Made by a program: the position numbers and the translations under genes | In this document: piece by piece, positions 27,335-64,000 of the stretch | How positions within the stretch are numbered: position 1 is the first letter of the stretch | Layout: the number at the start of each line of letters is the position of its first letter | NCBI RefSeq assembly: GCF_964194025.1 | Contig: NC_134476.1 | Coordinates: 23,064,001 to 23,128,000, forward strand | Source of the DNA: Convolutriloba macropyga | Taxonomy: Eukaryota | Direction of reading: 5' to 3' | Length of the DNA stretch: 64,000 nucleotides | Notes under the pieces: model-generated | The model's input: the letters and a program-made list of their open reading frames with translations, nothing else | The model's database searches: none | What the model was told of the DNA's origin: nothing

Positions 27335-27585
27335 GTGCAAGGCTATAGCTTGGCAGTGGTTTCCTCCTGGCTAGTGACGGTGCTGTTAAATTGAGCTCGT
27401 CGGCCATCCCCGTTAATCTTAAAATTTTATCTCACGAACGGAACACATCGATTACGTCCCTGATTGCTTAGATAAACCAATAACCCTTTAATTGTATTCC
27501 CATAACTTAATATTGTAATATAAAATTGTTGAGTGCATAAAGAAATCATTCTAATTGAAGTTCAATTTTTACAACTGTTCTAAGG

Positions 27586-29610: not shown

Positions 29611-30636
29611 GCGGGGTATCGTACTTCCTTTCTTTGGGAAATAATGATGCGCAGCTACCTGATGAAAATCTGCAAACAGATAGTCAGAACATTCAAGTGG
29701 CTGTTAACTTATCGGACAATGTCGTTAGACCTAATCATCCTTTTTCCCAGGGTGAAGCGTTGAATCTGACGTCAAATTATGCCAATCCCAATAACTCTGA
29801 ACAACGGCAGAGCCAAGCAGCGAACGTAAACAACAGTATGATGCTAAGTACACACACAAACCTTCCAATTTTTGTGAATCAGAGCACAAACAATCAAAAC
29901 GTCGTTGCTAATACAAACAACACGAATGTTGTCTTAAGCCAACTGTTCAATCAGAATCAAAATGCAAACGTTCAGAGTAGACATAACCCACTTCCGAACC
30001 ATCGTCAAAATTATTATCCAATGGCAAGCCACCTCTTACCGAATTTAACTCTTTGGCATATGCCAACTTTAGATACTGTAGCCCAGTCAGTTTCCCAAGT
30101 GAACGCACAACAAAAGGCAAACTCAAGTATGAGCCAACCTGTGGTATCGTTTTCGAGTGGTGGTACAACTTTTTATCATCAAAACCCCTTCTCAACAGCT
30201 ACCCTGGTAAATCAGCCAAATAAACCAGTGTCAGCACCTTTGCATCAACCTGCAGCTCCAACGCCTCTTTATCAACAACCCACGATGCCCATATACCCGT
30301 CAAGCTCTTTCACGCCTCTCCCCGCAGCACAAATATCTCAAACAAATCAGTCATTCAATGTGAAAGACTTGGCCGACGCTATAACTTCTAGTCATCTCAA
30401 TCCCTTGCCTAAATGGAACCTTTCCAATTACAATGGAGACCCACTTTTGTGGCACGAAAAGATAGGACAATTCAGAAGTGCAATAGATTCCCAGAATCTC
30501 TCAGATGCTGCCAAATTGACCTATCTGAAAGGACTTTTAACTGGAAAAGCGAAGAAATCCATAGAACAGTTCGCGTATTCAGGAGCTGTATACAATGACG
30601 CAATGAAAGTGTTGGAAAGAAAATTCGGCCAACCAC
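28517..30636 (+). repeat. 1020-bp internal direct duplication of gag (28517-29536 = 29617-30636)
   Basis: Offset 1100 bp, ~5 substitutions seen; the 80-bp junction contains a copy of 31113-31183. Confidence 0.95.
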
Positions 30637-33600: not shown

Positions 33601-35384
33601 AAATTCTAGAGTCAACAACTGTTGATCAGTGGTTCCATGTGCCAACCGCAGACAACCCAGCAGATGCTGGAACAAGAGGCATGTCAGCTGAAAACTTAAG
33701 AACAAGCAGTTGGTTAACAGGGGCAAGCTTTTTGTTTACTTCTCACTTCCCTTTTCAACCCAGCACAAGCATCAGAGATAGCCTTCAAACAAAACCATCC
33801 TTGCACAATTCACAAAAGGATGTAACGGAGCCACAAATGGCGTTTGCCGGCAATACAATGCAACCTGAGAAAATATTTGATTTTGATAGGTACAGTTCTT
33901 TCAACAAACTAGTTCGAATTACAGCCTATCTCCTCCGTATACTCCCCAAACATGCTTCATATCTTACACCAGACCGCAATATTTGCAATCCTGATGAACT
34001 TCAAGTAGCTGAGGCTAAGCTTCAGTTTCTCATGCAGTTGGAATCATTCCCAGTTGAACAAAAACTTCACTTTGATGGTAAACAAATTAACAAGAAGAGT
34101 CGCATCGCACCATTCTCGCCCTTCATTGGCCCAAATGCCTTGATTAGATCAACCGGCCGATTGAAACGTTTGGTCGAGGCGGACTATGACCTCAAACCCC
34201 CCATTATTTTAGATGGCCGTCATCCTGCAGTAAAATTGTTTCTTTTGAAGGCACACCTAGAAAACCACCGCGAAAGTGTTGAATTCTTACGAGCTTTCAT
34301 CCAGCGCCGTTTTGCTATCATCAGGCTTCGTCCCGCTTTGAGGTCAATCAAGCACAATTGTATCTTGTGTCGTAAGCGTAGTGCAGACACAGTGAAGCCA
34401 ATTATGGCGGATCTACCAGTCGAGCGTCTGTCCTATGGTAACCCACCTTTCTCCAACTCAGGGATAGACTAATTCGGACCGTTCTATGTCGCCGTCAAGC
34501 GTTCAACTGAGAAGCGCTGGGGGTTCCTTTTCACGTGCCTTATAACTCGAGCGCTCCACATTGAAGTCGTAAATTCTATGGATACCAGCTCTTGTGTTAT
34601 GGGCATAGAAAGATTCATCGCACGAAGAGGGACACCGCAAGTTCTATGGTCAGACAATGGAACAAACTTTACTGGTGCGGAGAAAGAGTTGTCAGCTTGC
34701 TTTAAAGCTTTGAACCAACGTGCGATTGCAAGTAAAATGTCACAGAAAGGTATTAAGTGGCACTTTAACCCTCCATCTTCCCCCCATCATGGTGGTTCGT
34801 GGGAACGCATGGTACGGAGTGTCAAACGGACATTCTACGCTGTACTCGGTAACCACCGATTGACTGACGAGGTGCTCCAAACAACATTCTGTCTAGTTGA
34901 AATGACGCTCAACAACCGGCCGCTCACTTCTGTAAGCAATGATCCATCAGAAATGGACGCAATTACTCCAAATCATTTTCTCCTCGGGTTCCGTCCTAGT
35001 ATGCTCTCTTCATTAGTTGAAAAGGAAGATTTTAATCACAGAAAGCGTTACGTCCGGGCGCAATCATATGACGACTCAATTTGGAAACGATGGTTGGATG
35101 AGTACGTACCGGCTTTGAATCGTCGCAGTAAATGGTCAAAATCCGCTTCAGATGAGCTAAAAACAGGAGATCTGGTATGGCTCGCCGAAGACTCATCTCC
35201 CCGAGGCCATTTTCCTCTAGGACGTATCGAAAAACTTCGCTTTGGTGACGACGGCTTTGCCCGTTCCGCCGAAATAAGAACTAAGTCTGGTAACTATGTC
35301 AGACCCGTAATTAAATTAATTCCAGTTTTTGGTACACCACTTTTGGGGCCGGAGGATGTGAATACAAATGTAAGCGAGCAATAA
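29617..35384 (+). pseudogene. pol: BEL/Pao Gag-Pol remainder (zinc knuckles, PR, RT, RNase H, IN) with an in-frame TAA at 34470-34472
   Basis: Triple CCHC cluster, ALCDPACS (PR, D-T/S altered), WYLPH..KPGKIR, SAGIEGMF (RT Asp to Gly), YMDD, HVFGDSS/PKLEL/NPAD, GID*FGP, SDNGTNF, GGSWE; frame continues into the 34578 ORF and the 3' LTR. Confidence 0.93.
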
Positions 35385-35936
35385 ATGTGAGCGAGAAATG
35401 TGAACTGCAAATGTGAACGAGTTTATATTTAAATTGTATGCGTAACAAAACAAGTAACCATAGCGCAGTTAGTATAGCACTGTACTCTCAATCTAAAGAC
35501 CGGTGTTTCGAGCCCCAACCATGTCAAACCTTACGAAGCAAAATCCGTATTCTAATACATGTGCCTTGAGCAAAGAGCCGTTTGAGAGCGAGCGGTTTTA
35601 AGCTAAACTACCAGATTTAGACAAAGATGACTTGGATATAAAATTATTAGAGTAACAAAACGCATTGAATGGTTTAACTTTAAGGCCAAAGCAAGGCCAA
35701 ATTACGTCACACATGAACTGAATTGACCTTTATTGGCCCACAAAAGGCTAAGAGGTCCTGTCTAGCCTTTTCGCCGCCAGTGTTACTTTAGATATCTTAT
35801 GTGTACGACCAAGAGGATTGTTATGCGTGATCGAATAAGTGCTTATCGTTGAAAATACGTATTGTTATCTTGAACAAAAATTGTTCTTTTAACCGTTTTC
35901 TGTAGTTCGAGTCTTAGACGTTATCCAGCTCGAATA
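35357..35936 (+). repeat. 3' LTR of BEL/Pao element (580 bp)
   Basis: Preceded by PPT 35345-35356, followed by TSD CTTAT. Confidence 0.95.
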
Positions 35937-43616: not shown

Positions 43617-44487
43617 CTATCTCCAACTCTCACATGCAAAAGCGAGATCACCCTGGTCTTTATAGTCATGTAAAAACACACCATTATATCGTCTAATTGC
43701 TATCACACAGGGCTCGTGGCCATCCACCCCGTTGGGTTCATTGTGGTCCCAAGGGATCATTCCATTCACGTTATTGCCCTCCATATCTTGCCAAAACCCG
43801 TTTGAATAGTTGCTAACACCAACCCAAAAATTATGCCCGCCAAAATGATTGGAAACAATGGTCATCAGTAACTGATCAGCTTGCCCGAAGAAAAGATGAT
43901 ATTTATCGCTCGCCGTGAAAACCATTTCATCACAGAATATAGCGGCGGCGGCTCGGTTCGCGTGGTGAAGTCCAAAAACTACTGTTTCTGATTTTCGGCC
44001 AATGGAGCAATCGTCTGTTTTGCCGCCATGGGTATCGCCAATGCATTCTCTTAGCCGGTTGATTCCACTAAATTCACCGCTAGAGATAGATTCAGGATCG
44101 CTCCACTCGGTCCAGTGAGCATCGGTTCGCTTTGGGTTAATTGCACACTTACCGGGACTGAGATCATTTTGAATACTTTTGATCATTCCGTTTTCGTAAC
44201 ATATAGGTTGAACAAATTTTGTCATTCCGACATAAACGCATCTTGGTGCGTTTTTCAAACGGTCAGTCGGGTCTGTAAAGCTGTTTGTTCCTTTTGTGTG
44301 ATAAACATTGTGAATATCTCGAGAGTTCAGCTCGCATATTTGAACAACACTACAATAATTAAAAGATTTGCAAGCTGGAATTAGTAGACATACTTTTGCA
44401 CAGTCCAGAAACCGATATTGATATCTTTTCGAAATTATTGTTGTCACCAATCTTTTGTTGTTGTGAATTTCGTCGAAGATAGTAAAT
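43617..44487 (-). CDS. PAN/apple + TSP1-like + C-type lectin protein, paralog of 16779-17637 (terminal exon)
   Basis: Shares CKSFN.C, PGKCAIN.KRTDAHWTEW, HLFFGQ.DQ, FWVGV, EPNG, RYNGVF.HD, FACESW; probable acceptor TTTTAAAACAG| at 44488. Confidence 0.85.
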
Positions 44488-47400: not shown

Positions 47401-50400
47401 CTTAGAATTTAACTATTCAAACCCAATTCCACTTTATAAATCGAAGCCTAACGGGTAGCTCTGCTAGTCTATTATCAATTATCAGGAATTGATTCAAACG
47501 CCAAAATCAAATAGCAGTAAGGAGTTTCAATAGAATCAAATTTTGTTCTCGGCCAAGTTTCTATTGGAAAACTCAAAAGATTTTTTAAAGAAAGGAAGTT
47601 TTGGGAATTCATCGAGAAGCTAAAAAATTGAAATATAAATTGGAAGAGTTTTTCGCGACTCGTTTTTTAGGAGTTGTCCAAGAATTGCTTCAGAAATTCA
47701 AAAAAAAACGATATAAAATACATTCGGAGAGTTGAATGAAAATTTTTACCAATAAAACACCTGTTTCTTTTTTTTTGAGGATGAACAATCGGTAGAAACG
47801 TTTTTACCTTTAATTTTTCTGAAACGAAGAAAAGGATTTTAAGGTGTAAAAAAATCGTCAAAAAAAATTGTTTCGAAAAAATTTATTTTGTTGTCATCTG
47901 TTTTCATTGGTTGCGTGCTCTCTAACTGATTCAGAGTTTTCTTTGTTTGAAATTTTTTTTATCTGATTTAATACTTGAATTTTGTTTGATTTCTTAAGTT
48001 CTTAACTTTTTACCTCTTTTTTCAGTTTCTGTAATTATGGTTTTCAACAAGAGTTAAGCTTTCTGTCACTGTTTTGCTCACCATTGTTTGTATTGAGGAA
48101 ACAAATTTGTCACGAACAATTTTCTTGAATTAAAGACCATGAGTTAAATTATGTGGCATGCAACCGCTCTACTTAACCATTTTTAACTTATCTTGCCTTT
48201 TAATGTTTGTATTATGAAATGCCTGGAGATATAATTGAAGATTTTTGGCTTTTAAAGAGAGTAGAAATAAAGCTAAGCAATTGATGGATGCGGCGTTTTA
48301 CGTAGCATGGGCTGCTTAACGTGCGTTTTCACCAAAAAAAACTCTTAATTAACAATTGTTTTTTAAAATTAATTTGTGAAGAGTCGGGCTCTCTTAAGAT
48401 TTCAACGCCTTGTGTCCTCTGATCCAGTTTTAACTGTTACAGTTGAGGAAAGCAGGCCTAATTACGTTTGAATATGGCAACTTTTGGATTGAAATCTGTA
48501 TTTTTCAACTTGCAAGTCTAATGATATTGGCTTTGTTTGCGCTCGACAAAAATTGACCAGATGACCAGAGCTTCTGCTCATGCTATGTCTAATTATTTTA
48601 TGCACTATTTGTTCTGAAATTTAAATCTAACATAAACAATATTTCGTTTTGTTGTACATTTTTTTGCCATCCTTTGATTTTTTTAGTACTGAATTTCCCG
48701 TAGAGTTTATATACGTGCTCCTCAGATGCACGCGCCTTTACAAATTCACGTTAGTTACCCAGGTTGAGGTGCACGACCCTTAAATCAGCTCTGATCAGGC
48801 CCACTTGGGTCACAAACAGGGGGGTAAAGCGTGACCCGGCAACAGTCCGACAGCAAGTATACGGTCTGGGAAGTCTGATCATGGCCGCATCCAAACTCTG
48901 AACGATCTGATCGGAGCGCCGTCAAGAATCTGGTAAAATGGTCATCAGGATAGTATTAACAGAGCACATTCCAGAGTAGCTAAGTCTGGCGCCTCCTATG
49001 CGCGACGCAAGTTGGTCTAATCAGATCCAGTTTCCATCTGGTATGATCAGATATGATGGCTTGGGATGCGCGCCTTGGTTTGGATAGTTCAATTTAATTA
49101 ACATAAAAAAGCTTCGCTCAGAAATAGCAGTTTTGAGTAACCTACCTGTTCGCTAACATCGGCAGAACGATTGAATTAAGTATCCCCGACAACAAAATCA
49201 TAAAAATTAAGATGTGCATGGCGATTTGAAGCATTTCAATGCTTCTTTTAGATTTTAGGTTTCCAAATTTTGGTAGATTTTTCAACAAAGTTACCGCTGA
49301 ACTCAATATTTAAATATATTATATAAGCTTCATAGCTCGTAAGAGTTTGAAAGCAAAACTGTAGATCAAAGTATATCGATTGAAAGTCTGATGAAATGCT
49401 CAATGGCATCAAAATTTCCTGTAGCCGAATAATTGCTGATTAATATTTCAGTTTGCTTCATCAATTTATATTATACTATAATAACAGACTTAAATGCCAG
49501 GTACGCCCGCATTGGAACAATTGAGATAAAAATTGATTTTATAGCGGTTTTCATTTTAAAAATGTTATCAACAAAATCCCTTCTACGGCCTCAATCTGGG
49601 ACCATTTTAACGATTTAAATCCTCTTAAATCCATTTACTTATGTTGAAAAAAATGGATTATAGTCGTTTAGAGAACATTTGAAATGGATTTAAATTGAGC
49701 TACGAAAACTCCCTTAAATAGATTATTATCTCCGCTCAGTGAAAACCGATATATTTTTAATTTTAAATTAACATTTCAATTATTTTTAAAGTTTTAATTT
49801 AGAGTTTCAAGTCCATCAGTTTTCCATCAGTTTCAGTCCTTCCGCTCCATGTGATATCTTCGCAACAGCAAGTCCATCGGCTCAACAGGTGCCCAGATGA
49901 AGAAACTGAAGATCTGCATCCAAAAGAGAGAACAAAATGCTGTGAAACGTTGAAAATTTTTCAAATAGTGTAAAATTAGCAAATTTTTTGATCAAATAAT
50001 GGATTTTCGACAATTTTTCGGCTATTTGTTCGTTTTTCGGACCTATTTTTGAATAATTTTCGTATATTTTTGAAGGGGTTGACTTACTTTTGTCCCGTTT
50101 TTTTGGAGATCGTTTGCCTGAAATCAAGGGATAACTGAATTAGTTGAATTGAAACTCAAAAATCCAATTTGAGCTAACCGATTTTTGGTCTTTGGGAGAT
50201 GAATATTTGGGCTGTGATGTTGTAAATCTCCAATTTGAATCTTGAAAGAAAACATTTTGCGAAGCCAAAAAATAATGTAAAAAATTTGTTGAATTGACAT
50301 TTTAAACTATCAAATTTGGCTGGGCTGCTACAGATCACACAATACGGGATCTCTTTATGTATGCCAGTCAAACTTGACAAAAGATATAACAAATCGAAGG

Positions 50401-50521
50401 CAAAGATATATGCCTAAGACCTGTCTGTGCTATAAGTCTCAATTTAAAATAGTTGGGGGGCTGAAAGTATTAAATTTATAAAAGAGTAAATATAAAATTA
50501 CAGCTTACTAATTACCAGTTG

Positions 50522-51410
50522 TGTAGTGAAGAATTGGAGGTGAGCTGTTGGGCGATCGTTCACTTGGGTGTTTCTTCAGTTATGTTATTTGTCGAAAAAG
50601 AAAGTTATAAAATTAAATCTGGAATTATTAGTCTAAGTTATTAAACAATTTTGTTCGACTATTTTATTGTTAAAGTGAAGTTAAATTTTGAGAAAAATGA
50701 AAGCAGTTGTCTGCTGCTTGTTTCTGGGAGTGATTTCTGGTTCTCTAATTTTATTCCGTCCCACTTCGCTGAGAGAAACAATTAATTCCTCTCAGCTCCG
50801 TTTGGGCCGATAGGGAGCGAATCACAAACTCACGTTCATAGTGAGGTGCTTCTTAATTTTCCTATTGGCCGAGAAGGCAAGAGAATTAACTCTTTTTTAT
50901 CTCACGGAAAAAATATTGAAACTCCAAAAAATAATAAAAATCTAAAAAGCTGAGAGCATCAATTATTGATTTCGTAGGCGCCTGTTTTCTGCTTTTCCCC
51001 TCTTCTAAAACCGCAACAATTATGGTTTTCTTGGGGGCTTTTTATGAGACTCTATTGTCTTTTCCCCTGAAGCAATCTGCTTCATCTTTATTGAAATTGG
51101 GGGAAAAGATCTGCATTGCAACTGTCAAAAGCAGAAGTAATTTAAATCAAAAGAAACTGTGGTTTTACAGGCCGCCTACGTTCAACAATGTACATTTTCT
51201 ATCCTGGATATAAGCGAGGAGATCCAGGCCTAAAGTTGTGTTATTTAAATAAGTCGAACTGAGTTGTTTAAATACTCGTGTACTGGTAGTCTTAACAAGC
51301 GTTAGTTTGTTTAGCGCGCGGCGAAAGAATGGTTAATTAGCGCCTAAATACGTTCGCTCTAATGCGGGATTAATTGTCCGCTCATTTGTAACGGCTCTCT
51401 TAATACTACA
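50522..51410 (-). repeat. Putative 3' LTR (889 bp)
   Basis: Starts TGTAGT immediately after the purine tract on the minus strand and ends ACTACA (6-bp terminal inverted repeat); partner LTR not in window, so the far end is inferred. Confidence 0.8.
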
Positions 51411-51427
51411 CCTCACCCCGATTTTTA
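51411..51427 (-). promoter_or_regulatory. Polypurine tract
   Basis: Minus strand TAAAAATCGGGGTGAGG abutting TGTAGT. Confidence 0.8.
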
Positions 51428-51602: not shown

Positions 51603-52736
51603 TTATTCAAAAAATTCTGGGGGCAAAATGACTGGGCTTGGCACTGGACTGTTTCCATCGTCCATGATATCAACCACTTCCACTACTTCATCTCCGTCTT
51701 CATGCTTTTCGGTATTTGATAGTTCCTTGATTATCCTTTTTTGTTTTCGGTTCTTCTTCTTGAGTTTCGTCAATTCAGAGTTGAGTTGTTGTACTTTTTC
51801 AATCAGTTTTTTGTTCTCCACTCCTAAATTCTGATTGGCTGTAGTAATTTCTAAATGCTTTCTTGCATACACTTTGTTAATTTCTTTAACATTACTTTCC
51901 TCCGTTTTTTTTACTTGCTGGGAGACGATGTACTGCCTCCGCCAATAGTCATCGCTTGTTATTTTCTCCTTTTCACTGTTCTGCATTTGTAATCTTTCAA
52001 ATCTAATTCGTAGCTCCTGCAATTCGGTTTCTTTAACAAATAACTCCTGTCGGAACTTGGAATTCTCCGAAATTAGTGAAGCTTGGGTGACTTCTTCGAT
52101 GGCGTCCGCAGGCGTCGGGAAGGCAGTTAAGTGGGCATAAGGGAAGTTGACATACGAGTCCAGCTGATTGTTTCTGGCGAGGTAAGTGTTCTTTTGGGTA
52201 TCTCTGTCTTTTATTCTCCAGACGCTTGTTGTTTCTGGTAATGAGAACTCTTTCAAAATAGGCAGGTTTTCAGTTTTCGCAAGAAATTCTTCGCCGGTTG
52301 AAATGTTCTGAACCTTAACTTTGTCAGAGATTCTGAACTTATTGGCTTGCATTTTCAAAGTGTACTTCAAGTTCGTCACAAATCTGGGGCTCATGGGATT
52401 TACAACGTTTTCCCTAATTTTCTGAATTTTCAAGCAATAGGGGATGTCCTTTCGCTCTTTGTCACTAATGAGGTCATCTATATTTGCCATTTTTCTTATC
52501 TTCTCTGCGTGACTGCTTTGTTGATTTCCTGGTGCTGGTCTCTTTCGATTGACTATCCAATTGTTTTGCGGATCATATTGACTCGAAGTTGATGGAGGTG
52601 CAATGGTTGTAGTAAATGGAGGCTTTGAGAAAATAGGAGGCTGGGAAGAATGGGTTTGTGTTTGTTCTTGTTGTGTTGTTACTTGTTGATGTTGATTGGG
52701 GATTACTACGCTTGCGAGTGTGGGTCTGGTAGTCAT
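51603..52736 (-). CDS. 377-aa accessory protein: T/Q/P/S-rich N-terminus, coiled coil, basic NLS-like motifs, acidic tail
   Basis: Long intact ATG ORF; RKRP and KKKNRKQKR; heptad-like ELQELRIRFERLQ and LIEKVQQLNSELTKL; no family recognised. Confidence 0.8.
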   Translation of the reverse strand: MTTRPTLASVVIPNQHQQVTTQQEQTQTHSSQPPIFSKPPFTTTIAPPSTSSQYDPQNNWIVNRKRPAPGNQQSSHAEKIRKMANIDDLISDKERKDIPYCLKIQKIRENVVNPMSPRFVTNLKYTLKMQANKFRISDKVKVQNISTGEEFLAKTENLPILKEFSLPETTSVWRIKDRDTQKNTYLARNNQLDSYVNFPYAHLTAFPTPADAIEEVTQASLISENSKFRQELFVKETELQELRIRFERLQMQNSEKEKITSDDYWRRQYIVSQQVKKTEESNVKEINKVYARKHLEITTANQNLGVENKKLIEKVQQLNSELTKLKKKNRKQKRIIKELSNTEKHEDGDEVVEVVDIMDDGNSPVPSPVILPPEFFE

Positions 52737-53344: not shown

Positions 53345-53725
53345 CTAAAGAAAATTTTTGCAAATGGGACATCTTGTCAGCTTATTTATGCACACTCGAC
53401 AGAATCGGTGTTTGTCATGTTGGGAAAAATGTGGGTGTTTTGTTACTCCTAATTCTGTTTTCATTTTTTTGCATAAATTGCAATGAAAGTAGGATGTGAT
53501 CAGGACGGGAAGACAAGGTCGAAGACAAATGGGACATTTAGGGTTTGGGTATCTTTTAAAAAGTGCTTTTCTGCAAGGAATACATACATAGTGGGGATTT
53601 TCTTTGGGGAATTGCTTGTGTAGTTTTTCTACAATAACGGTTTTTCGTGAACATATAGGGCAGATAATGTCCTTATGGGGATAGAACCAACGGAAACCGT
53701 CGAATAGGGATTGTGAAAGACCCAT
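53345..53725 (-). CDS. Double RING-like (C2H2C4) zinc-finger protein 1, possible N-myristoylation
   Basis: CPIC-x10-H-x8-H-x2-CIPC-x12-CPIC then CNLC..H..H-x2-CRVC-x6-CPIC; starts MGLSQS. Confidence 0.85.
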   Translation of the reverse strand: MGLSQSLFDGFRWFYPHKDIICPICSRKTVIVEKLHKQFPKENPHYVCIPCRKALFKRYPNPKCPICLRPCLPVLITSYFHCNLCKKMKTELGVTKHPHFSQHDKHRFCRVCINKLTRCPICKNFL

Positions 53726-54138: not shown

Positions 54139-54516
54139 TTATGTGGTTGTTTTTTTGCAACGAGGGCATAATTTATAATCTTCTACGCAAAATTTACAAA
54201 AGTTGACGGGCTTATGATCACTGTGATGAAACGTTTTTGCAACAGAGTATTGAAATCTTGTTTGTTTGCAAATATCACATTGAAACCAGTTAAAGATTGA
54301 AAAGATAACATTAAATTTAGAGCATTTAGGACAAAAATCGTAGCCCATATCTTTTATAACATATTGGTAACAGAGCAGACACATTACGTGGGGTAGTTCG
54401 TCAGGGGGGTTCTCGTGTAATTTCTTGAAAACAATTGTTTCACGTCTGCAGCATAAACAAATTAATGAGACCGGTTTGGATTCTATAGTATTGGTTTCTT
54501 TGTCAGTTGTATTCAT
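54139..54516 (-). CDS. Double RING-like zinc-finger protein 2
   Basis: CLCC-x10-H-x8-H-x2-CLLC-x12-CPKC; WFQCDIC..HH..H..CKFC-x6-CPRC. Confidence 0.85.
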   Translation of the reverse strand: MNTTDKETNTIESKPVSLICLCCRRETIVFKKLHENPPDELPHVMCLLCYQYVIKDMGYDFCPKCSKFNVIFSIFNWFQCDICKQTRFQYSVAKTFHHSDHKPVNFCKFCVEDYKLCPRCKKTTT

Positions 54517-54542: not shown

Positions 54543-54746
54543 TTATGGGACTGGTATGGTTGGAGGATTTGGTTGTAGATTATTTTGGGATTTTATTGCT
54601 TGGTCTATTACTAATATAACTACTAACATCAAAAAATTGAAAGGAATACTTACAACAACGAGGAAAACGGTTAAAATGAAGGAGAAGGCTGCTGCAATAA
54701 TCATAAGGGCCATTAATAAAAAATCAAGTACTTTGGGGATAAACAT
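54543..54746 (-). CDS. 67-aa hydrophobic membrane peptide with Pro-rich tail
   Basis: First ATG at 54746; ~37 uncharged residues FLLMALMIIAAAFSFILTVFLVVVSIPFNFLMLVVILVI. Confidence 0.6.
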   Translation of the reverse strand: MFIPKVLDFLLMALMIIAAAFSFILTVFLVVVSIPFNFLMLVVILVIDQAIKSQNNLQPNPPTIPVP

Positions 54747-54784
54747 TTTGGATAATTTGTGAAGGTTGTTTCGAACCAAGGATT

Positions 54785-55183
54785 TTACCACGGGTTGTTT
54801 GGGTCAATTGTTTGTTTGCATAAGGGGCATTTAGTAGTGGTGAAGGTCATACACTGCAAACAAATTGATTGTTTTGGGTGAAAATCTCCGAAGTGACTGT
54901 GGCAGGTGGATAACTTTTTGACTTCTTGACAAGAATCACACTGGAAATAATGGCAATGACTGATTGTATAAATGGGAGTTACGCAAATGGGGCATTTAGG
55001 TTGGTTCCAATATTTAAATAATTCGTTTCTACAAGGAATGCAAGCAAAATGGGGGGGCTGACCATTTGGTTTTTTGTGCATTTTTTTGAATTGACGGCAA
55101 GGGAGATAACAAACAGGGCATTCAACTTTAGGGGTTGTATCAATTTGAGGTTGCTGAGACGATATTTTCAGAATGTTTCCCAT
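54785..55183 (-). CDS. Double RING-like zinc-finger protein 3
   Basis: CPVC-x10-H-x8-H-x2-CIPC-x12-CPIC; YFQCDSC..H.H...H..CLQC-x7-CPLC; starts MGN; ATG overlaps upstream stop (TAATG). Confidence 0.85.
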   Translation of the reverse strand: MGNILKISSQQPQIDTTPKVECPVCYLPCRQFKKMHKKPNGQPPHFACIPCRNELFKYWNQPKCPICVTPIYTISHCHYFQCDSCQEVKKLSTCHSHFGDFHPKQSICLQCMTFTTTKCPLCKQTIDPNNPW

Positions 55184-55449
55184 TATAAGGACAAATTAGA
55201 AAGATCCGGGTATACGAGTTCTAATCCATGGTGTTCAAGTTCGTTGGGGATAGTTACATTTAAATCTGCAATAGCAAAAAAGAAATTCCAGTGTTTCTCG
55301 TTTGGATAAATGTAATAATGATTAATGGTACCGGTGCTTAAAAACATATAAGTTATCTTGATACATGCTTTATACTGTGTGAAACAAATATTGAACCATC
55401 TTTCTACTTTAACAATTTTAATTTTTTCCTTACCAATAAACAAAATCAT
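55183..55449 (-). CDS. Unknown small-protein family, paralog A (88 aa)
   Basis: ERWF...P.EKHWNFF...PNEL; C-terminal YPDL. Confidence 0.78.
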   Translation of the reverse strand: MILFIGKEKIKIVKVERWFNICFTQYKACIKITYMFLSTGTINHYYIYPNEKHWNFFFAIADLNVTIPNELEHHGLELVYPDLSNLSL

Positions 55450-55583
55450 TTTAGTTTTAACAATTTGGAAAGAAATGAGGGGAAAAGAACAAATTGATCA
55501 GAAAAAAAGGATAGAATAAAATGAAGAAGAGGAAAGGAGAAAAAAAATTTTTGTGGAGAGCAAGTTATGTAGAACAAATTACT

Positions 55584-55814
55584 TTACTGAAGAGCGCCCA
55601 AGTTGACTGGGAAGTGCTCTTCGATATCGATGAGTGCGAGAAAGAATTCCCAGTGCATCATTCCCATGGTGACTCGAGTAGAACCCTCACATCCACGTTC
55701 GTAGTCAGTATAATGTATGATTATACAGGGCTTTATTTCTGCAGTGGGAGTTTCAATGAAAGATTTCTCGAGGGATTCTACTTTGACTAGTCGCTCACCA
55801 AAGTGGAACAGCAT
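55584..55814 (-). CDS. Unknown small-protein family, paralog B (76 aa)
   Basis: EKSF...PCIIIHY...HWEFF...PVNL; TAATG overlap with C. Confidence 0.78.
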   Translation of the reverse strand: MLFHFGERLVKVESLEKSFIETPTAEIKPCIIIHYTDYERGCEGSTRVTMGMMHWEFFLALIDIEEHFPVNLGALQ

Positions 55815-56047
55815 TATAGGAGATCTAAATTAAAAGGGATTTTGGAACCATTTAAAGCTTGGGATACATTTATGAAGAATGTCCAATAGGGGGAAGATGG
55901 TGTTAAGATGATGGTTCCATCAGTCCAAGTGTTTAAATATTCAAAATGGAGTATTAGTTGTGGTATAACTCTGTTACTTTTTGTTGTCACAAATGATTTT
56001 TCAAAAAATTGATTTTGTATAAGGCAATTTTGGTATGAGAATACCAT
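55814..56047 (-). CDS. Unknown small-protein family, paralog C (77 aa)
   Basis: EKSF...PQLILHFE..TW...ILTPSSPYWTFF...PFNL. Confidence 0.78.
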   Translation of the reverse strand: MVFSYQNCLIQNQFFEKSFVTTKSNRVIPQLILHFEYLNTWTDGTIILTPSSPYWTFFINVSQALNGSKIPFNLDLL

Positions 56048-56056
56048 TGCTGTTTT

Positions 56057-56341
56057 TTAATTGGTAATTGTTTCAAATTCTTTAGTAATTAAATCGTTTT
56101 GAGAAGAGTCACTTTTCGGCAATTCAAAATAAAGATTGTGAGGTACACAGTTTGGGTTTTCTAGAATAAAGAGGAAGAATTTCCAATGAACTGAGAGAGG
56201 ATTAATACTTATTAAACAAATTTTTTCACTTTGGATTTCTTTGAGCGTTACTAGCATAGTAGGTACAGGAGTTGGGTATGCATCAAAAGATCGTTGAATT
56301 TTTTGTAACTCTACAAATTTATTGTTAACTGCAAATATCAT
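56057..56341 (-). CDS. Unknown small-protein family, paralog D (94 aa)
   Basis: QRSF...PTMLV...INPLSVHWKFF...PHNL. Confidence 0.78.
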   Translation of the reverse strand: MIFAVNNKFVELQKIQRSFDAYPTPVPTMLVTLKEIQSEKICLISINPLSVHWKFFLFILENPNCVPHNLYFELPKSDSSQNDLITKEFETITN

Positions 56342-56356
56342 AGTTTAGAATGATAC

Positions 56357-56596
56357 CTATGCAATGTAGATTGGATGTTGTACTTGAAATACCGAGTTCT
56401 CTTTGAATGCTAGAAAAATGGTGAATTCGGCGAACTGAGGATGAGTAATGAAAATAGTTAAAAGTCTGTAAATATTTGTCATGGGTTTTTTTGCGAAAGT
56501 CATTATACTTATAGCGGAAACATAGTATACGGCTAATAGCTCAAAATTTTGGTTTCCGATTCTGATTTGTAAGTTTCTATTAGTTAAATGGATCAT
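56357..56596 (-). CDS. Small protein F (79 aa), possible distant member of the family
   Basis: LQIRIG..HPQFAEF resembles G (LFIRFG..HSNFQYF); overlaps end of E by 17 nt. Confidence 0.6.
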   Translation of the reverse strand: MIHLTNRNLQIRIGNQNFELLAVYYVSAISIMTFAKKPMTNIYRLLTIFITHPQFAEFTIFLAFKENSVFQVQHPIYIA

Positions 56597-56822
56597 GTTG
56601 TTGATCTAGCTCATTTGGCAGACTATTAGGGTCGAATTGTGCTAAATACACGAAATAATTCCAATACAACGAATGAGGGGTTAAAATCACAGTATTGTTT
56701 TCCCAAGTGTCCCAAAACTCAAAATTTATAACGATTTGAGGGAAAATGTCTCCGTGATTTTCTTCAAAAGTTTTCTTTATTTGATAAATTGTAACGAGTC
56801 TATCTTGAAACAAAAAGTACAT
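56580..56822 (-). CDS. Unknown small-protein family, paralog E (80 aa)
   Basis: KKTF...PQIVINFE..DTW...ILTPHSLYWNYF...PNEL; closest to C. Confidence 0.78.
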   Translation of the reverse strand: MYFLFQDRLVTIYQIKKTFEENHGDIFPQIVINFEFWDTWENNTVILTPHSLYWNYFVYLAQFDPNSLPNELDQQHDPFN

Positions 56823-57123
56823 TAATGGAAGCGTTTTAGTTGTTAATTAACTTATTGTTCTTCATTTCAAAACTATGTATAAAAGTATGTAAATGTAAAA
56901 AAAAGGATAAAAAAGGGTGTGTCAATTATTTCTGAAAAGAGGATTATTGACAACGATTGATATTTATAGATAATATATCAATCGGATTCACTGCAGCAAA
57001 ATCGAAGTAGGGGAAGAGTGCAGGCAATAGCTAGATAGACATAGTTGCGATTACATAGTTGAAAATGGATTATAAGAATTAAAAAGCAAGGAAGGAATCC
57101 ACACATGTCTCTTAGAGGAAAAG

Positions 57124-57408
57124 TCAAAGTCTAATAATATTTTTCTTCAGACGCTTTGAAACAATTTTGTATTCGACTCCAATGTTTACAAAAGTAATTG
57201 TGTCATCAATCAGGGCTCTTAACAATGAGAAGTATTGAAAATTTGAATGCGGTACGTCCAAGTCTATAATGTCACTGAAGTAGAAAGATGCAACTCTAAT
57301 AGTTACAGTAGTTTTTAAATCGGAAAGACTTGAGGATAATATCTGTCCGGTGTATTGTCCAAATCGAATGAATAAAGCGTTAGGCTGTTTTATGAATTTG
57401 GGTTGCAT
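57124..57408 (-). CDS. Small protein G (94 aa), first ORF after env
   Basis: ATG ORF, similar to F; basic C-terminus. Confidence 0.6.
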   Translation of the reverse strand: MQPKFIKQPNALFIRFGQYTGQILSSSLSDLKTTVTIRVASFYFSDIIDLDVPHSNFQYFSLLRALIDDTITFVNIGVEYKIVSKRLKKNIIRL

Positions 57409-57532: not shown

Positions 57533-59876
57533 TTAAGGAGGTGCCACCACACTTCGAATGGTTGCATCGTTTTGCGGTTGTGGTTGATGTGACGCCAGAT
57601 TTGGGTATTCTACTTTATTATTTTCTGTATGACAATGCTCGTCAATTTTATTTTCTCTTGGTTGATCCTCAACGCATTTGTAAGTTTTTTCTATTGTGCT
57701 GTAAGGTTGATAATTACTGAGCGGTAAAAAATGATTATTGTTCTGTGGGGCCGACGGTTTGGTTTCGTTAGAGAATACCGGTGTAAAGAACGATAAGATA
57801 CAAAGATTATATGTTGCTCCTAATAGAATTTTCCAAAAACCCATTGTTGGATATTTTGTGGATTTCGAACGCTCTTATGATTGTTACGATTACATCAGTT
57901 AAGAATTTTATGCACAAGAAACAAGCAAAATAAACTCCAATTTTTTCCAGATAAAAACTGATGATTCCAAAAGTGCCTTTGAACTGGTCTGTAAAAAATG
58001 TTGGTGAAAGAAGAGAATCTAGATAAATTTGTCTGTTAATTCCCATTGCTGACGCATAGATATCTTTTTGAGAATAGTCTATGCTTCTTCCTTCTAGAAC
58101 TTCTCTTGAAATTTTTGTCAAAACAGATTTTGAAGCTTCCGAATGCAAGATATTGTCCCAAAACGATTTAAGTTGATTTGGTGTGTAAATTCCGGCACGT
58201 TGCGATTCGTAACCGGTAAATTTTGGAATAGAACTAATAACTCTTGAAGAGAATATTTTTGGCGGTTGTAAAGGAACAGGTGCTGGCATCAAATGGTACC
58301 ATGAATTTTCATTATCAATATCTAATTGGTAGGCATTTTTGTAGCCTCCAACACAATCTACTTCGTTTGCAAAAGGGTAGTTTTGTCGAGTAATTGGGTC
58401 GACGAACATTGTCCTACCATCATAATGAATAGGAATCCTATCATAACACTGTTCAAGAACCTGAAGTGGTGAGTTTCGTTTTGGACAGTGGTACAGCCAA
58501 CCTATGCTACCATCTGTGTCTAAGAACATCGAGCGGTTGCCGGTTAACATATATCCAGCTAAACGATTGTTTTGGATAGCCTGCATTAGTATCATTTGTT
58601 TTTGAGTTCGGTCAAGTTCGCATTGTTCTATGACCAAACCTTTCCATGCTTGTTTTATTTGCATGTAATTATGATATATGACAAAATCCATTTTTACCGC
58701 AAGGTTAAGATCATAGTCTAACTTGTCTTTGTCTAAGTGTTCCCATGCAACAAAACCATTGTCGGATGTTCGGATCTGTTCATCTGAAGGCTTCCTATTA
58801 AACCCATTTACACTTAGGCTATTGTCAGGTTCAACACGAAGTTTATGAAAAAATTGTTGAGTTTTTGTTTTATAAGGTTTGCCAGTCTTCATAATAAATC
58901 AGCCTTTATAAGAAACATATAAAGAATCTAAATTTGTTCTGTAAATAAATTCTGGTTTTCCACACACCTTTTCTTTTTCATCAATTACTCTAATTTTTAT
59001 GTCCATTTCAGCAGGAGAATACGTTCCTGGTCCTTCATAGGGCGTCTCCGGTTTTTCATCACTCACTATGAAATACTGTACGTTACCAAGTTCGTTTTCA
59101 TGTTTTAGCATTTTTGCGTTTTGTGAAAATCTTTTAGTAACTATACAATTTTCCGGTGCCTCCCAATTGTATGCAAAGGGGTCGAGTGATGTCGAATGAC
59201 AACCTCCTTCTGAGAGGGCACAAGGAAGTTTTAGTCCTTGACTGTTATAGACAGTTCTGTCATTAAGATCAATATCGAGTACAGTTTCTTGCATCAGGGT
59301 TTCAAAAGAGAAATGTTTAATTTGACCACGATTATCAAAAGATGTTGATGATTCACCTTCAAGATCAACTCCCTGGTTTTTATAGGAGACAGTTTTTATT
59401 CCATGTTTTATGTCAATTTCCATGTCATCATCGTCAAATTCAGTAACAGTAATTTTTCCAGTTTTATTAGCATTTAGGCATTGTTCGGGTGAAACAATAA
59501 TATCGTATGTTATTATTGGAGCGTTGTGTACAATTGATGAATGGGAAAACATACAACAATTATAACGAATGAGCATTGCAGTGACTTTGCACATAAGAGC
59601 TTTAACAAAGGTCCGATAAGACCGTTGATAAAGTGTTACATGTGTATCAACCATCTGAATGTTTTCGGGTGTAATTTTGCAAGGAGAAACTTGTGTTAAA
59701 GCATACATTTTATTTTCTTTCATTTTAGAACAGTCATAGTGAATGACCCTAAGTTTGTTAGATACGTCATTAATATCCTCAGTAGCGTTAATAACTATAG
59801 AAAGAGTACAAAAGTAGAAAAGGCTTATAAGTAAATAAGAAAAATAAAGTTTTTCAAAACAAGGATATCTTTTCAT
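57533..59876 (-). pseudogene. env: Envelope glycoprotein, chuvirus-G / class III (gB-related) type, ~780 aa, one in-frame TGA (58899-58901) and one frameshift (~57845)
   Basis: Signal peptide; HYDC, CKV..YNCCMFSHSS, LPC...GGC...YNW...NC, KMDFV..CELDR, AGYM..C, CYDRIPI..FVDPITR; C-terminal TM segments. Confidence 0.82.
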
Positions 59877-59978: not shown

Positions 59979-62900
59979 TTAAGTAAATCCGGCTTGATAG
60001 CGTGATGGCGGCTTGGCCGAGCGACTAGAAGTTCGCCTATTATTATTATTATTTTCTAAAGTTTGTAAATTAGAAGGTCCTTGTTCCGATGTATTAGGGC
60101 GGAGAGGACTTAAATTAGGGTCTAGAGGTATTCTAGAATTGTGCTGTGGGCAAGGAGTTGAACTTCTTGTTCGACTACCGCTAGGTAGGTGTGTTTGGAC
60201 TGGAGGTGGGTTATTACGACCACCTGAACTTGCTTCGTTGAATCCAGAATCGAAATTGGTAGGGGTTCGGTCAGGGTCGAAGTTCTGCACAGGGGAGTCT
60301 CTTCGTATGAAATTATCCACGGGGAAATATTCGGTGTTAGTGGGGCTTTGGAAGGAGAATTTAGTCAAAGGACTATTGAGTTTATTCATCTGACTTGTCA
60401 TTAGATTATTATAAAATGTGTCACAATTATTTTTATCTATACCATACTCTAGGGTTAACTCTGGTATAGTTTCAGTAGCTGGGTAGTACTCGACTAGGTG
60501 ATTTCTATGAGCGACCTTCCTGGTGGCCGGGTTGCTATCTAAAGTTAATTCATAGTTAACATTGGTTAGTTTTTTTCTACAGTATAAGGACCTGATCTTA
60601 GTTCATGTAGTTTTTTTGACTTTCCTAACTCAATTTGATGGTTTTCCATTAGAACTTTTTGTCCAACCTCAAGTGGCTTGCCTAATTTGTGTTTGTTTCT
60701 ATGTTTATGTGCGCGGTTATTGTTTTCTAAGCTCTTTTTATAAGCGTTATTGTATATTTGTTTGAATTGGTTTTCTCGCATAAGCAACGAATTGTTAATA
60801 GTTGGTTTTAGAAGTTTGTCAATTTCGGTGTTTTTTGAAGTTTGCAAGGTATGCCTGTGAAGAGGCAGGTCTTAGCAAAACTCGGAAGAGCATGTGAGTT
60901 GTGAATTTCTTAGGAGTCCTAACTTAAGTGACAGAGGTATCTCTGGTTTTTGTCCGAACACAATTTCATAAGGTGAAATTCCAGTACTAGCATTTGGAAC
61001 CGTGTTATGAGAAAAGGCAAATTTTGATGCCAGTTCGTCCCATTTACCTCGAGCTTGTTCTAGAAAAATTCGGAAATGTGCTCCTAGATGTTTGTTTTGG
61101 ATCTCGACTTTACCATTAGTCCAAGGCGCATAAGCAGTTCGAGGTGCGGGTGTTATACCTAATTCATGAATGTAACTCGCAAAATCTTGGTTCATGAATG
61201 CCGAACCCTTATCATAAACAAGTTTTTGTGGTATTCCAAAAGACAAGATGAACTTTTCTAAAGCTTTTATGGTGTCTACTGCGTCTGTGGAACGTACGGG
61301 GTATACTTGAATGAAACGTGAAAATGAATCGACAATAACTAAACAATGGTGTTTACCGTTCGATGGAGGATTTAAAGGTCCTTTGTGATCAATATGGACC
61401 GTATGAAAGGGGAATGGGACTGTATCAGTCCACTTTTCGAGAGGTGCTTCGTGGATATCTCTCCGTTTTTGTTTATTTTTTTGGCATTCAAGGCAATCAG
61501 CAATTAGGTTTTCAATCCATTTATACATTCCGGGCCAATAAAAAAATCGTTTTACATTAGCAAGTGTTTTATCTAAATCTACATGACCTGACAGTTCACA
61601 ATGAGCTAGCTCAAAAACTTTAAAGAACAATGACAGTGGTACACAAATTTTTAAGTATTCAATATCTGGTTCGTCTGTTTGTTGTTGAATACATAAGATG
61701 TTACCTACAAAACTCAGTTTCTCAAAGTTATTAATGTACGACCTTATGGCTTTAGATTGTCGGAATTCAATTTTCTTTTCATCTTTGTTATTGTTCGTCC
61801 TTAATTGGCGAATTTGTTGTATCACTGGGTCTTTTAATTGTTCTTGACAAATTACCGATGTATTTAAATCAACTTCTTTAGAGAAGATTGTCAGTTTATC
61901 GATGAGTTCTCTTGCATCTTTTATTTTTGGATTTTCGGGAAGTTTTTTTGCTAATTCGGTTTTATCTATACAAGTGCTATTTTTCACGAGAAAAACTTTA
62001 TCGTATTCTAGAGGGAATCTGTACTCCGAGTCTTTGGTATTAGTTTGATCAATGTAGAGTTTGTCAAAATCTAATTCCGGTGACTGGTTCTCATTGAACA
62101 ATTCAAATTCCGAAATTGGGTCAAAATTTTGTTCGGTTATCCCTTCATCAGGGTTAGGAATCACTTTCTGTATAATGATCAGACGTTTCGTCTTCCTCCT
62201 GTTCTGACACAGGGGTTATTTCATGTTTGCGGTGACGCCTATAGTGGTTAATTGATGAACCATACGAGAAATCTTCCGAAATATTGTTTATTGAGCAAAG
62301 TCTGTTTTGATTATTGTCGTACTTTTGCTTTACCATTTTGTCATTTTTGAAAATGAATTTGTCGATACCCGTTATGCTTTGTTTTAGGATTGGAAAGAAG
62401 TCATCTGCTGGTCCCTTTTCATTATCACGCAAAATGAAGTATTTTTCCTCGTTACCATGCTCGTCGTAAAAACTAATGTCTTTTGGTATCTTTTTTGTGT
62501 TTAAGTTGATACTTGTCCAGATCTTTAAGTTTCACATTGCGACTTAGGATGTCAGGAAAAGCTAAGTTTTTTCCTTCAGTCCAAATAATTTTCAAGTTCT
62601 GAAATTGAGATATTACTAACTGGTATCTAAAAAACCTGTGAGAGAGTTTTCCTCTTCTACCCCATAGATACATTAAAGGCTTATGGTCGGTGTACACATA
62701 TACTGGATGGGGAGAACCAATTAGGTAATGCTCATAAGTTTGTAGTGCAGATATTACACCGCAAAGTTCGCGTGCTGTGGTGCTCATTTTTTGTTCCTCT
62801 TTAGTGTAAATTCTAGAATTAAAAGACACTATTCGTTTCCCTTCTGGAAATTCTTGAATGAGAATTGAGCCTACTCCTATGGAAGAAGCGTCTACATGCA

Positions 62901-64000
62901 CGTGGAAAGGGTATTTAGTATCAGGTATTGCTAAGATAGTATCTTCGCTAATCCTGTTTTTAATGTCGTTAAACAGTTTTTCGTGTTCTGTTGTCCAGAC
63001 AAATTTAGTTTCTGTGCGGGTTAGGTCATAAAATGGTTTGCAGTCAACATGCAAATTTTTGATGTACATGCTGTAGAATCCTAAGCAACCTAGAACTCTC
63101 ATGACATCACGTTTGTTTTCAGGCGACTTAAGTGCTTTTAAATCTGCTACTCGCTTCTTGACTGGTTGTATCCCATCTTTACCTACTACATGTCCCAAGA
63201 ACTGTACTTCCCTAAGGAAAAATTTAGTCTTTTCAGGTTGAGCTTTTAATCCTGATTTCCTTAAAAGTTCATGGTACTTGTCAATTATTTCAAACATTTC
63301 GGTTTCATCTTGTGCTTGCATGATGGTGTCATCAATGTAGGTTATAGCTTGTTTTTTTCTAATTAATGGTGCAAAATGGATAGTCATTATACGACTGAAG
63401 AAATTAGGTAGACCGCATAGGCCGTAAAATCCGCGTTCAAATGTGTATTGCTTTGGACCAATTACAAAACTTACCAGCTGTTTGGTTTCCTCAGTTAGAG
63501 GGACTTGGTTATAGGCTGAACAAAGATCACTGGTTGTGAAGAAATTACCTTTTAATCTAGTTAATAGACTTCCAATTGGTTCGAGTGGCCATGAATATCG
63601 ACTAAGGTCTGTTATTGAATTCAGGTATCGGGCATCTATAACCAGTTTTACTGTGTTCCCCTTGGGTAGGATTATGATTGGATTAATAAATTCTGATCCC
63701 ATTTCTTTATCATTACCCATTTCCCGGATTATACCTGTTTTACACAGTTGTTCCAAAAGGTTTTCTAGTTTTTCCTGATAATGTAATGGTACTTTGGATG
63801 GTCTTTGTTTTGTCAAAGTTGATTTAGGTAAAAGTTTAACATGAAACTTTTGTTTTATCTTTCCAACATCGTATTTTTGTTGAGAGTAAACGTCTTTATT
63901 TTTAGTTAAAGTCCTCAGTAACTTGTCTAAGTTTTCGTCATTAATATCAGCTTGACTGAAATCAAATTTTTTGAGAAACGCTTGATCGGTTTTGTCAAAT
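59979..64000 (-). pseudogene. pol: Ty3/Gypsy Pol (RT, RNase H, integrase with GPY/F), 3 frameshifts (~62490, ~62160, ~60570) and one stop (60872-60874); open at window edge
   Basis: KLVIDARYLN, SDLCSAYNQ, YIDD, FLGH; VDASSIG, REL, TDHKPL; H-x5-H..CLEC; IDHKGP, DKGSAF, GKVE; SGPY; HRNHL; terminal RTSSRSAKPPSRY. Confidence 0.95.

Follow-up and report, generated by a model that had tools for sequence, protein, structure and literature searches.

Anciently duplicated, selected accessory genes in one clade of env-bearing Ty3/gypsy-type endogenous retroviruses

Ty3/gypsy elements that carry a class III env gene are widespread in metazoans (PMC13524379, PMC7642597). The 'ancient errantiviruses' have been described with three open reading frames (ORFs), in a text that mentions neither accessory nor RING genes (PMC13524379), and capture of chuvirus G has been reported in mosquitoes (PMC7642597). 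Long terminal repeat (LTR) retrotransposons of bdelloid rotifers contain captured third ORFs of single types, which are env-like or encode a GDSL esterase or a DEDDy exonuclease (PMC5408684). Env-carrying Ty3/gypsy elements of invertebrates have been treated as simple three-gene retroviruses, and accessory complexity has been deemed a trait of vertebrate retroviruses. Here, we analysed a stretch of 64,000 nucleotides (nt) from Convolutriloba macropyga (NCBI RefSeq assembly GCF_964194025.1, contig NC_134476.1, positions 23,064,001 to 23,128,000), hereafter called the window, which contains a large part of an env-bearing Ty3/gypsy-type endogenous retrovirus. Five small genes downstream of its env, named A to E, are anciently duplicated, selected accessory genes that are specific to one clade of such elements.

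The array of small genes (55183-57408) consists of seven ATG-initiated ORFs of 76-94 amino acids (aa) on the minus strand, which together fill 79% of its 2,226 nt (Table 1). The order of transcription is G, A, F, B, C, D and E, followed by RING-like gene 1, a small transmembrane (TM) ORF, RING-like genes 2 and 3, and ORF377. In 2,000 shuffles of the array region, ORFs of 75 aa or more numbered 0.14 on average and 2 at most, versus seven in the real sequence. The proteins encoded by A-E are about 75 aa long and mostly acidic (isoelectric point, pI, 4.2-6.9), and have neither a hydrophobic N-terminal signal nor a TM segment.

We compared A-E pairwise by Smith-Waterman alignment, and all ten scores were 4.1-18.9 standard deviations above those of 1,000 shuffles. 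In nine of the ten pairs no shuffle reached the real score, while the score of C and E was reached by 6 of the 1,000. The original prediction, made from the letters of the window, had described several motifs shared by A-E, and these were borne out by an alignment of 35 family sequences. F19 of the [KR][ST]F motif and W54 of the [HY]W-x-[FY]F motif were at least 90% conserved, and the C-terminal P-x-x-L motif was at least 70% conserved. Sequence searches of Pfam, PHROGs and PDB gave no significant match for any of the genes A-G. More specifically, A-E had no match in Pfam-A at E-values (E) up to 1; the best PHROGs value was 0.019, for one A-E member, and the best value of a PDB profile search was 0.038, for a designed protein. 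Hence, A-E score well above shuffled sequences and have no clear match to a described retroelement domain in these three databases. On their scores and shared motifs, A-E are a true paralogous family.

Selection was assessed by the ratio of non-synonymous to synonymous differences (pN/pS) between the window copy of the element and three further copies, which are 97%, 93% and about 86% identical to it, using the two wrong reading frames as controls. All three comparisons use the window copy and are thus not independent; the contrast with the off-frame controls was large. The pN/pS ratio of A-E was 0.25 (binomial p = 5e-28), versus 0.99 and 1.52 in the off-frame controls. The same ratio of 0.25 was found for pol, integrase and env together (off-frame controls 0.91 and 1.74). 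Similar values were obtained for F (0.29), G (0.34), the three RING-like genes together (0.27) and the env tail (0.27), and the small hydrophobic ORF had a value of 0.66, which was not significant. These in-frame ratios far below the off-frame ratios imply that the differences between copies arose mostly in an active lineage under purifying selection. Purifying selection acted on A-E during the active life of the element lineage, and in this respect the small ORFs did not differ from the core genes. Genes F and G of the same array are likewise selected and conserved. The earlier claim that the ORFs are kept by selection had been argued from their openness, and the pN/pS ratios confirm it by a stronger test.

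Two explanations were excluded by these data, namely that the ORFs are chance or decaying reading frames, and that they are a host gene cluster merely adjoining a retroelement. The ORFs are small and lie in AT-rich DNA, in a copy that is damaged in gag, pol and env, as might be expected of chance reading frames. However, the shuffles never produced more than two ORFs of this size, and chance frames do not agree with a pN/pS ratio of 0.25 in frame versus about 1 or more off-frame. A host cluster does not agree with the location of the array within the LTR pair and its flanking target-site duplication, nor with the presence of the array in all copies that were fetched, which come from different loci and also from other samples. 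Co-option of the accessory genes by the host was considered as well, because the accessory ORFs are intact beside broken gag, pol and env genes. This idea was rejected: the number of lesions was about 0 versus 3 expected, which is not significant, and lesions in A, B and E do occur in other copies.

The element that carries the array is 19,951 bp long, is oriented on the minus strand and covers the window from at least position 50308 to its end. Its sequence upstream of the window was obtained from a 508-kb contig of the European Nucleotide Archive metagenome assembly ERZ25071359, which was reached by exact-protein match. The two LTRs of 1,103 bp, of which the 5' LTR lies outside the window, are 99.1% identical and each have TG at the 5' end. 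A TGG-initiated primer-binding site is located 2 nt after the 5' LTR. The domains are arranged in the order Retrotrans_gag / PEG10 capsid, RVT_1, RT_RNaseH, Integrase_H2C2 and rve. The env pieces of the window matched PF24664 (Monjiviricetes_fusion) with E-values of 1.9e-14 and 1.2e-22. Overall, the damage to this copy is light: gag carries in-frame stops, the pol pieces are separated by frame changes, and env has an in-frame TGA at 58899-58901 and a TM/tail piece in another frame. In its entirety, the post-env array takes up the 6.1 kb that separate env from the 3' LTR.

These features show that the element is a Ty3/gypsy-type, env-bearing endogenous retrovirus (Metaviridae-like). The viral setting suspected in the original prediction was thereby established, as the array belongs to a retrovirus-like element with LTRs, a target-site duplication, gag, pol and env. 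A second copy lies on another contig, with 97.2% identity over 15.1 kb and the same gene order; the homology ends exactly at the end of the LTR, and this copy adjoins a Cys-loop receptor gene. At 90% identity, the clusters of A, B, D and E comprised 114-147 member sequences, that of C comprised 38 and those of G 72 + 41, which points to more than 100 copies of the element. In the leader of the element, outside the window, a 104-nt unit is repeated six times in tandem in the interval from the 5' LTR to gag (L001 4-714), and small ORFs of 85, 78 and 124 aa precede gag. Three 5S rRNA genes (L003 1156-1274, 2789-2907 and 4046-4164) are located 3-6 kb upstream of the 5' LTR. The DNA on the two sides of the insertion is weakly similar (74% over about 100 nt), and the element may sit in a repeated spacer.

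A profile search of 1.84 billion representative proteins gave 41 hits. Every hit examined was a member of the A-E family, and neither named proteins nor Pfam domains were found among the examined hits. An iterated search with the 35-sequence profile added no new members and no named proteins, while word-indexed searches yielded only five orthologue groups. The elements that carry these genes can be divided into four subfamilies, all of them present in assembly ERZ25071359. Subfamily I, represented by the window, has five A-E-type members. Subfamily II (L007) has three members and an intact env of 660 aa; its array consists of G, A, F fused to B, one more member and a RING-like gene, and an aspartic protease was detected in this copy. 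Its orthologue of gene F occupies the same array position and is 31% identical. Subfamily IV (L012) is degraded, with at least four members followed by RING-like genes.

Subfamily III (L009-L011) has uninterrupted gag (428 aa), pol (1,581 aa) and env (762 aa) genes and four members. Its array consists of G, a 100-aa multi-TM protein, A-B-C-D, two RING-like proteins, a TM ORF and ORF293. The 762-aa env of L009 matched PF24664 with an E-value of 1e-42, and because the uninterrupted env of this subfamily includes the tail, we assigned the separate TM/tail piece of the window to env as well. The three copies share about 99.4% identity. All of gag, pol and env are uninterrupted in L010; L009 has a split pol and L011 a split gag. 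Judging by these sequences, the lineage of subfamily III appears to have been active recently. In L010, the block comprising G, the 100-aa TM gene and four members is tandemly duplicated (9400-10963 and 11290-12853). Family members were also found in another sample, where an 870-nt contig of ERZ17086273 contains a member followed by an MG-initial RING-like gene, and in the Tara Oceans marine metagenome, where two contigs contain two members straight after a related env. The latter source points to a marine host.

In a maximum-likelihood tree, each of the groups A, B, C, D and E mixes sequences from different subfamilies, with group support of 90-100. The duplications therefore predate the splits between the subfamilies. 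The order A-B-C-D has been kept in subfamily III. Some neighbouring genes are fused: C and D form one ORF in P0097, P0098 and P0108, with the same junction in three diverged sequences, and F and B are fused in subfamily II (L007 10001-10477). Protein identity between subfamilies I and III was 82% for reverse transcriptase (RT), 71% for integrase, 62-70% for env, 53% for G, 52% for RING-like protein 1 and 38-47% for A-D. A-E-type proteins thus diverge 3-4 times faster than RT between subfamilies. Repeating the pN/pS analysis within subfamily III had no power, as its copies are about 99.4% identical; even pol and env looked neutral, with a ratio of 0.86, as expected for very young insertions.

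AlphaFold was used to predict the structures of A and G. The model of A, based on the 35-sequence alignment, had a mean predicted local distance difference test (pLDDT) score of 87.2 and a predicted template modelling (TM) score, pTM, of 0.71. It consists of a four-stranded antiparallel sheet (residues 2-5, 8-22, 25-36 and 42-47) and a helix (54-60). The model of G, based on 24 orthologues, had a pLDDT of 80.5; four of its strands span residues 13-16, 19-28, 34-41 and 47-53, its helix spans 59-67, and two additional strands are present. Foldseek searches of PDB and BFVD with both models gave no hits at E-values up to 1e-3, and the hits of G were not informative. The best hits of model A had an E-value of 0.085 and a TM-score of 0.45 in PDB (domain I of eIF5A/EF-P) and an E-value of 0.035 and a TMq of 0.49 in BFVD; none reached a TM-score of 0.5, and we regard them as not significant. 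A chromodomain fold and an integrase SH3 fold were considered for A and rejected, since neither appeared among its Foldseek hits. The resemblance of A to the N-terminal SH3-like barrel of eIF5A/EF-P extends over 47 aligned residues with a root-mean-square deviation of about 2.9 A. However, E-values ranged from 0.085 to 0.5, TM-scores from 0.43 to 0.47 and identities mostly from 8 to 17% (up to 20%), and the hypusine-bearing loop has no counterpart in A-E. The resemblance is no evidence of a relationship.

The original prediction had counted five, perhaps seven, family members, with F and G as a possible distant subfamily sharing the motifs LxIRxG and HxxFxxF. The five stood, as described above, and the extension to F and G was not confirmed. 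Pairwise similarity was at chance level between F and G (z-score 0.83 with 1,000 shuffles) and between these two and A-E (z-scores -1.2 to 1.3). In hhalign comparisons with the orthologue profiles of F and G, E-values were 0.18-0.61 with probabilities below 1%, and the hidden Markov model (HMM) of A-E matched neither protein at E-values up to 0.01. Moreover, the LxIRxG and HxxFxxF motifs were not conserved in orthologues of F and G from other element subfamilies. All seven genes might still be one family in which F and G are very divergent, as they are alike in size, array and selection. The models of G and A also share the succession of four strands and a helix, in the same order and with similar lengths, and when the profiles of G and A-E are aligned locally, the best match (hhalign E 0.24) falls on the equivalent segment of strand 4 and helix. 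Yet the models of G and A have no Foldseek hits in common, and together with the chance-level scores and the unconserved motifs this makes a single family of seven rather unlikely. Distant homology of G to A-E is possible.

The genes that follow the A-E family encode zinc-finger proteins, which the original prediction had called RING proteins. The three proteins of the window are mutually paralogous and consist of two tandem modules, each with eight conserved Cys/His residues (C2H2C4). Ligands 3 and 4 are 8 residues apart in the first module and 4 in the second, versus the canonical 1-3, and the Pfam cut-off for RING domains was not reached: the best score was 25.9 bits for zf-C3HC4_3 (L009 RING137) versus a threshold of 27. 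The window proteins scored 16.5-21.7 bits against their own best RING profiles. The proteins may thus be called RING-like, and are not established RINGs. A search of JGI metagenomes and IMG/VR with a 3-sequence alignment of RING-like protein 1 found no relatives.

The RING-like proteins are basic (pI 8.2-9.6), versus the mostly acidic A-E. Two of the three in the window and most of their orthologues start with MG, often MGN, and each array examined contains an MG-initial RING-like gene. Such a start occurs in N-myristoylated proteins, for example the arenavirus Z protein. In every array examined, a RING-like gene directly follows the last A-E-type gene, with gaps of -1, +1, +16 and +31 nt in arrays of the main assembly and of +64 nt in the one from an independent second sample. 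Small hydrophobic ORFs comparable to that of the window are also present in subfamilies III and IV. In addition, the 301-nt spacer between G and A contains a Cys-rich hydrophobic ORF of 42 aa from ATG, which is present in copy L002 too and lies at the place of the 100-aa multi-TM gene of subfamily III.

The genes are packed extraordinarily tightly for a eukaryotic setting, in a manner resembling prokaryotic operons. Spacers in the array range from -17 to +45 nt: A and F overlap by 17 nt, F and B are 15 nt apart, and B and C are 9 nt apart. In the window, the stop and start codons of C/D and of E/RING-like gene 1 overlap as TAATG. With the A/F junction of L007 and the junction between the 100-aa TM gene and A in L009, UAAUG occurs at four junctions in three subfamilies, and most of the other spacers are 1-45 nt long. 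The DNAs of the subfamilies no longer align in the array, yet the stop/start overlaps and short spacers are conserved in kind. We propose that the array would be read from a polycistronic RNA, either genomic or spliced subgenomic. Because spacers are so short and several junctions have UAAUG, consecutive ORFs could be coupled by termination-reinitiation or very short-range rescanning. Spliced subgenomic RNAs are an alternative to translational coupling.

What might these proteins do? One answer is that A-E, perhaps together with F and G, form a single hetero-oligomer with a structural or assembly role in the virus-like particle, such as a matrix- or tegument-like layer that joins the capsid to the env tail, and are not host-directed adaptors. 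The orthologue groups have been retained in the same order across subfamilies, and neighbours are fused (C-D, F-B), as physically associated proteins sometimes are. The small TM proteins and MG-initial zinc-finger proteins of the array would suit a budding module, and the weak fold likeness of A to small SH3-like barrels would agree with such a role. Conversely, the number of members varies between subfamilies (3, 4, 5 and at least 4), which fits poorly to a fixed stoichiometry, and a far-downstream position in a polycistronic RNA predicts low abundance. Moreover, the only fused C-D locus fetched (P0097, L015) is a degraded copy, and neither sequence nor structure searches found similarity to a known virion protein. 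We consider an assembly complex unlikely.

Complex retroviruses place regulators of the Tat/Rev/Tas type after or around env. A-E could likewise regulate the expression of their own element, via RNA or its promoter, and the six 104-nt leader repeats could then be a response element. The mostly acidic A-E proteins, however, lack the basic or zinc-binding features of nucleic-acid-binding proteins, and five retained paralogs exceed the usual need of regulation. A regulatory role is therefore very improbable.

The reading that fits best is that A-E are intracellular accessory proteins that interact with the host and are co-expressed with the RING-like proteins. Each paralog would bind a different intracellular partner, and A-E would act together with the co-translated RING-like proteins, several of which have an MG start like that of N-myristoylated proteins. 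A-E would then serve as modules for target recognition or antagonism, through which the element would manipulate host factors. This model is preferred because A-E are soluble and acidic and combine fast evolution with purifying selection, and because a variable copy number and block duplication go together with an invariable linkage to basic, probably membrane-anchored RING-like proteins. The original prediction had likened the family to viral immune antagonists or to substrate adaptors of the adjacent RING proteins, and both ideas would be compatible with the adjacency or overlap of the RING-like genes, the variable copy number and a divergence 3-4 times that of RT.

Several observations weigh against this preferred reading. 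The case for a partnership between A-E and the RING-like proteins is built from sequence, and the zinc-ligand spacing and Pfam scores of the RING-like proteins are not those of canonical RINGs. The recent pN/pS ratio of A-E is not above that of pol and env, and thus no ongoing arms race is visible within subfamily I. The fold of A offers no functional lead (TM-scores of about 0.45), and all family members come from unannotated metagenome assemblies. Furthermore, stable orthologue groups in a fixed order would equally fit fixed subunits of one complex. A host-interaction role in concert with the RING-like proteins is thus possible and somewhat doubtful. As an overall account, we tentatively favour the combination of an accessory-gene family, coupled expression and a role in host interaction as the best explanation.

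A bolder version would make the array a self-contained retroviral toolkit for ubiquitin ligation. In this version, myristoylated RING-like ligases would use A-E as five interchangeable beta-sheet substrate receptors, all expressed from one stop/start-coupled polycistronic RNA, and would destroy host restriction factors or transposon-silencing factors. We regard it as speculative and quite unlikely; if true, a 'complex retrovirus' lifestyle would have evolved independently of the vertebrate lentiviruses.

Table 1. Positions of features in the window (position 1 is its first nucleotide).
Feature	Position	Strand	Remarks
Gene G	57124-57408	-	94 aa; first gene after env; orthologues in subfamilies II and III
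Paralog A	56580-56822	-	80 aa; z-scores 7.6-18.9 versus B-E; A-E HMM E 4e-31; AlphaFold pLDDT 87
Gene F	56357-56596	-	79 aa; overlaps end of A
Paralog B	56057-56341	-	94 aa, with C-terminal tail; orthologue group takes in subfamilies II and III
Paralog C	55814-56047	-	77 aa; stop overlaps start of D
Paralog D	55584-55814	-	76 aa; recognized by ORF, pairwise scores, HMM and tree
Paralog E	55183-55449	-	88 aa; stop overlaps start of RING-like gene 1
Tail of E with YPDL	55183-55230	-	
Cys-rich hydrophobic ORF between G and A	56978-57106	-	
RING-like zinc-finger protein 1	54785-55183	-	132 aa; begins MGN; two C2H2C4-type modules
Small hydrophobic, TM-like ORF	54543-54791	-	82 aa with a GTG start, 67 aa with an ATG start
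RING-like zinc-finger protein 2	54139-54516	-	125 aa
RING-like zinc-finger protein 3	53345-53725	-	126 aa; begins MGLSQS
ORF377, basic protein	51603-52736	-	Last gene before 3' LTR; 35% identical to ORF293 of subfamily III
Polypurine tract GGGGTGAGG	51411-51419	-	Adjoins 3' LTR
3' LTR	50308-51410	-	1,103 bp; 99.1% identical to 5' LTR
Target-site duplication GTTT	50304-50307		4 bp; beyond 3' LTR
pol region	59979-64000	-	
RT/RNase H	62473-63816	-	Continues past the window
Integrase	60872-62164	-	
Integrase C-terminal region	59979-60401	-	
env, class III, chuvirus-like	57533-59876	-	Three pieces: 58899-59876, 57807-58892 and TM/tail 57533-57844
env tail with YPNL	57590-57610	-	
Bel/Pao LTR retrotransposon	24343-35910	+	LTRs 24343-24870 and 35380-35910
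Internal duplication in Bel/Pao element	28513-28812 and 29613-29912		Exact, at least 300 nt
Satellite-like array, 96-nt period	468-1439		
Satellite-like array, 41-nt period	24872-25703		
Satellite-like array, 26-27-nt period	25851-26665		
PAN/apple-domain ORF	16779-17672	-	Weak C-type lectin match as well
PAN/apple-domain ORF	43617-44450	-	

Several further features were observed in the window. The tail of E contains YPDL, with YPNI in most other copies, and the env tail contains YPNL; these sequences resemble YPxL late-budding motifs, and their conservation is partial. Elsewhere, a Bel/Pao LTR retrotransposon contains Peptidase_A17, DUF1759, DUF5641 and rve domains between LTRs that are 94-97% identical, and has an exact internal duplication. 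Two of the three satellite-like tandem arrays, with periods of 41 and 26-27 nt, sit just inside the 5' LTR of this element. Two paralogous long ORFs with a PAN/apple domain have a 78%-identical DNA segment in common and are probably host genes or exons. Together with the Cys-loop receptor gene beside the second copy, they mark the host as an animal. An Rfam scan of the window gave no match.

Our literature search turned up neither the A-E family nor an earlier account of several genes arrayed behind env or of RING-like genes in elements of this kind. A-E would thus be a previously undescribed accessory-gene family on an already known backbone. The clade carries about a dozen selected post-env genes. 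Besides those for small membrane proteins and for two or three RING-like proteins, they include a five-member family without detectable relatives. It offers a system to study both the acquisition and expansion of candidate host-interaction genes by retroelements and the ribosomal reading of tightly coupled ORFs in eukaryotes. Since the near-identical copies of subfamily III have uninterrupted gag, pol and env, these genes are probably open to study in a living host.

Coupling by UAAUG is known in the SART1 non-LTR retrotransposon, in caliciviruses and in influenza B virus, and an ORF relay is known in the Caulimoviridae. The present array resembles these systems in its packed ORFs with UAAUG/AUGA-type overlaps, here in a reverse-transcribing element. 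Unlike in SART1-type coupling, spliced subgenomic mRNAs remain an alternative.

The arenavirus Z protein is a small N-myristoylated RING matrix protein. It can be compared with the RING-like proteins of the array, which are about 125-140 aa long, mostly start with MG, have zinc modules and belong to an enveloped virus-like element. These proteins differ in having two tandem C2H2C4-type modules with non-canonical spacing and sub-threshold Pfam RING scores, and homology is not implied. In lentiviruses, the paralog pair Vpr/Vpx, which folds as a three-helix bundle, recruits a host E3 ligase. A-E share with this pair that they are small paralogous accessory proteins, duplicated inside a retroviral genome and encoded near or after env, and a link to ubiquitin ligation is proposed for them as well. 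In contrast to the helical bundles of Vpr/Vpx, A is predicted to be beta-rich with one short helix, and there is no relation in sequence or fold; the parallel bears on a possible mechanism and not on kinship. Moreover, the ligase-like proteins of the present element would be virus-encoded, the paralogs number five or more, and the backbone is of the Metaviridae type instead of Retroviridae.

The elements of bdelloid rotifers are likewise LTR elements of invertebrates with ORFs beyond gag and pol, but have neither a multi-gene array nor an A-E family (PMC5408684). The class III env Ty3/gypsy elements (PMC13524379, PMC7642597) share with the element described here the LTRs, gag, pol (RT-RNase H-integrase) and a class III fusion glycoprotein downstream of pol. 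The difference lies in what follows env, which here comprises 6.1 kb and about 12 further ORFs in a 20-kb element.

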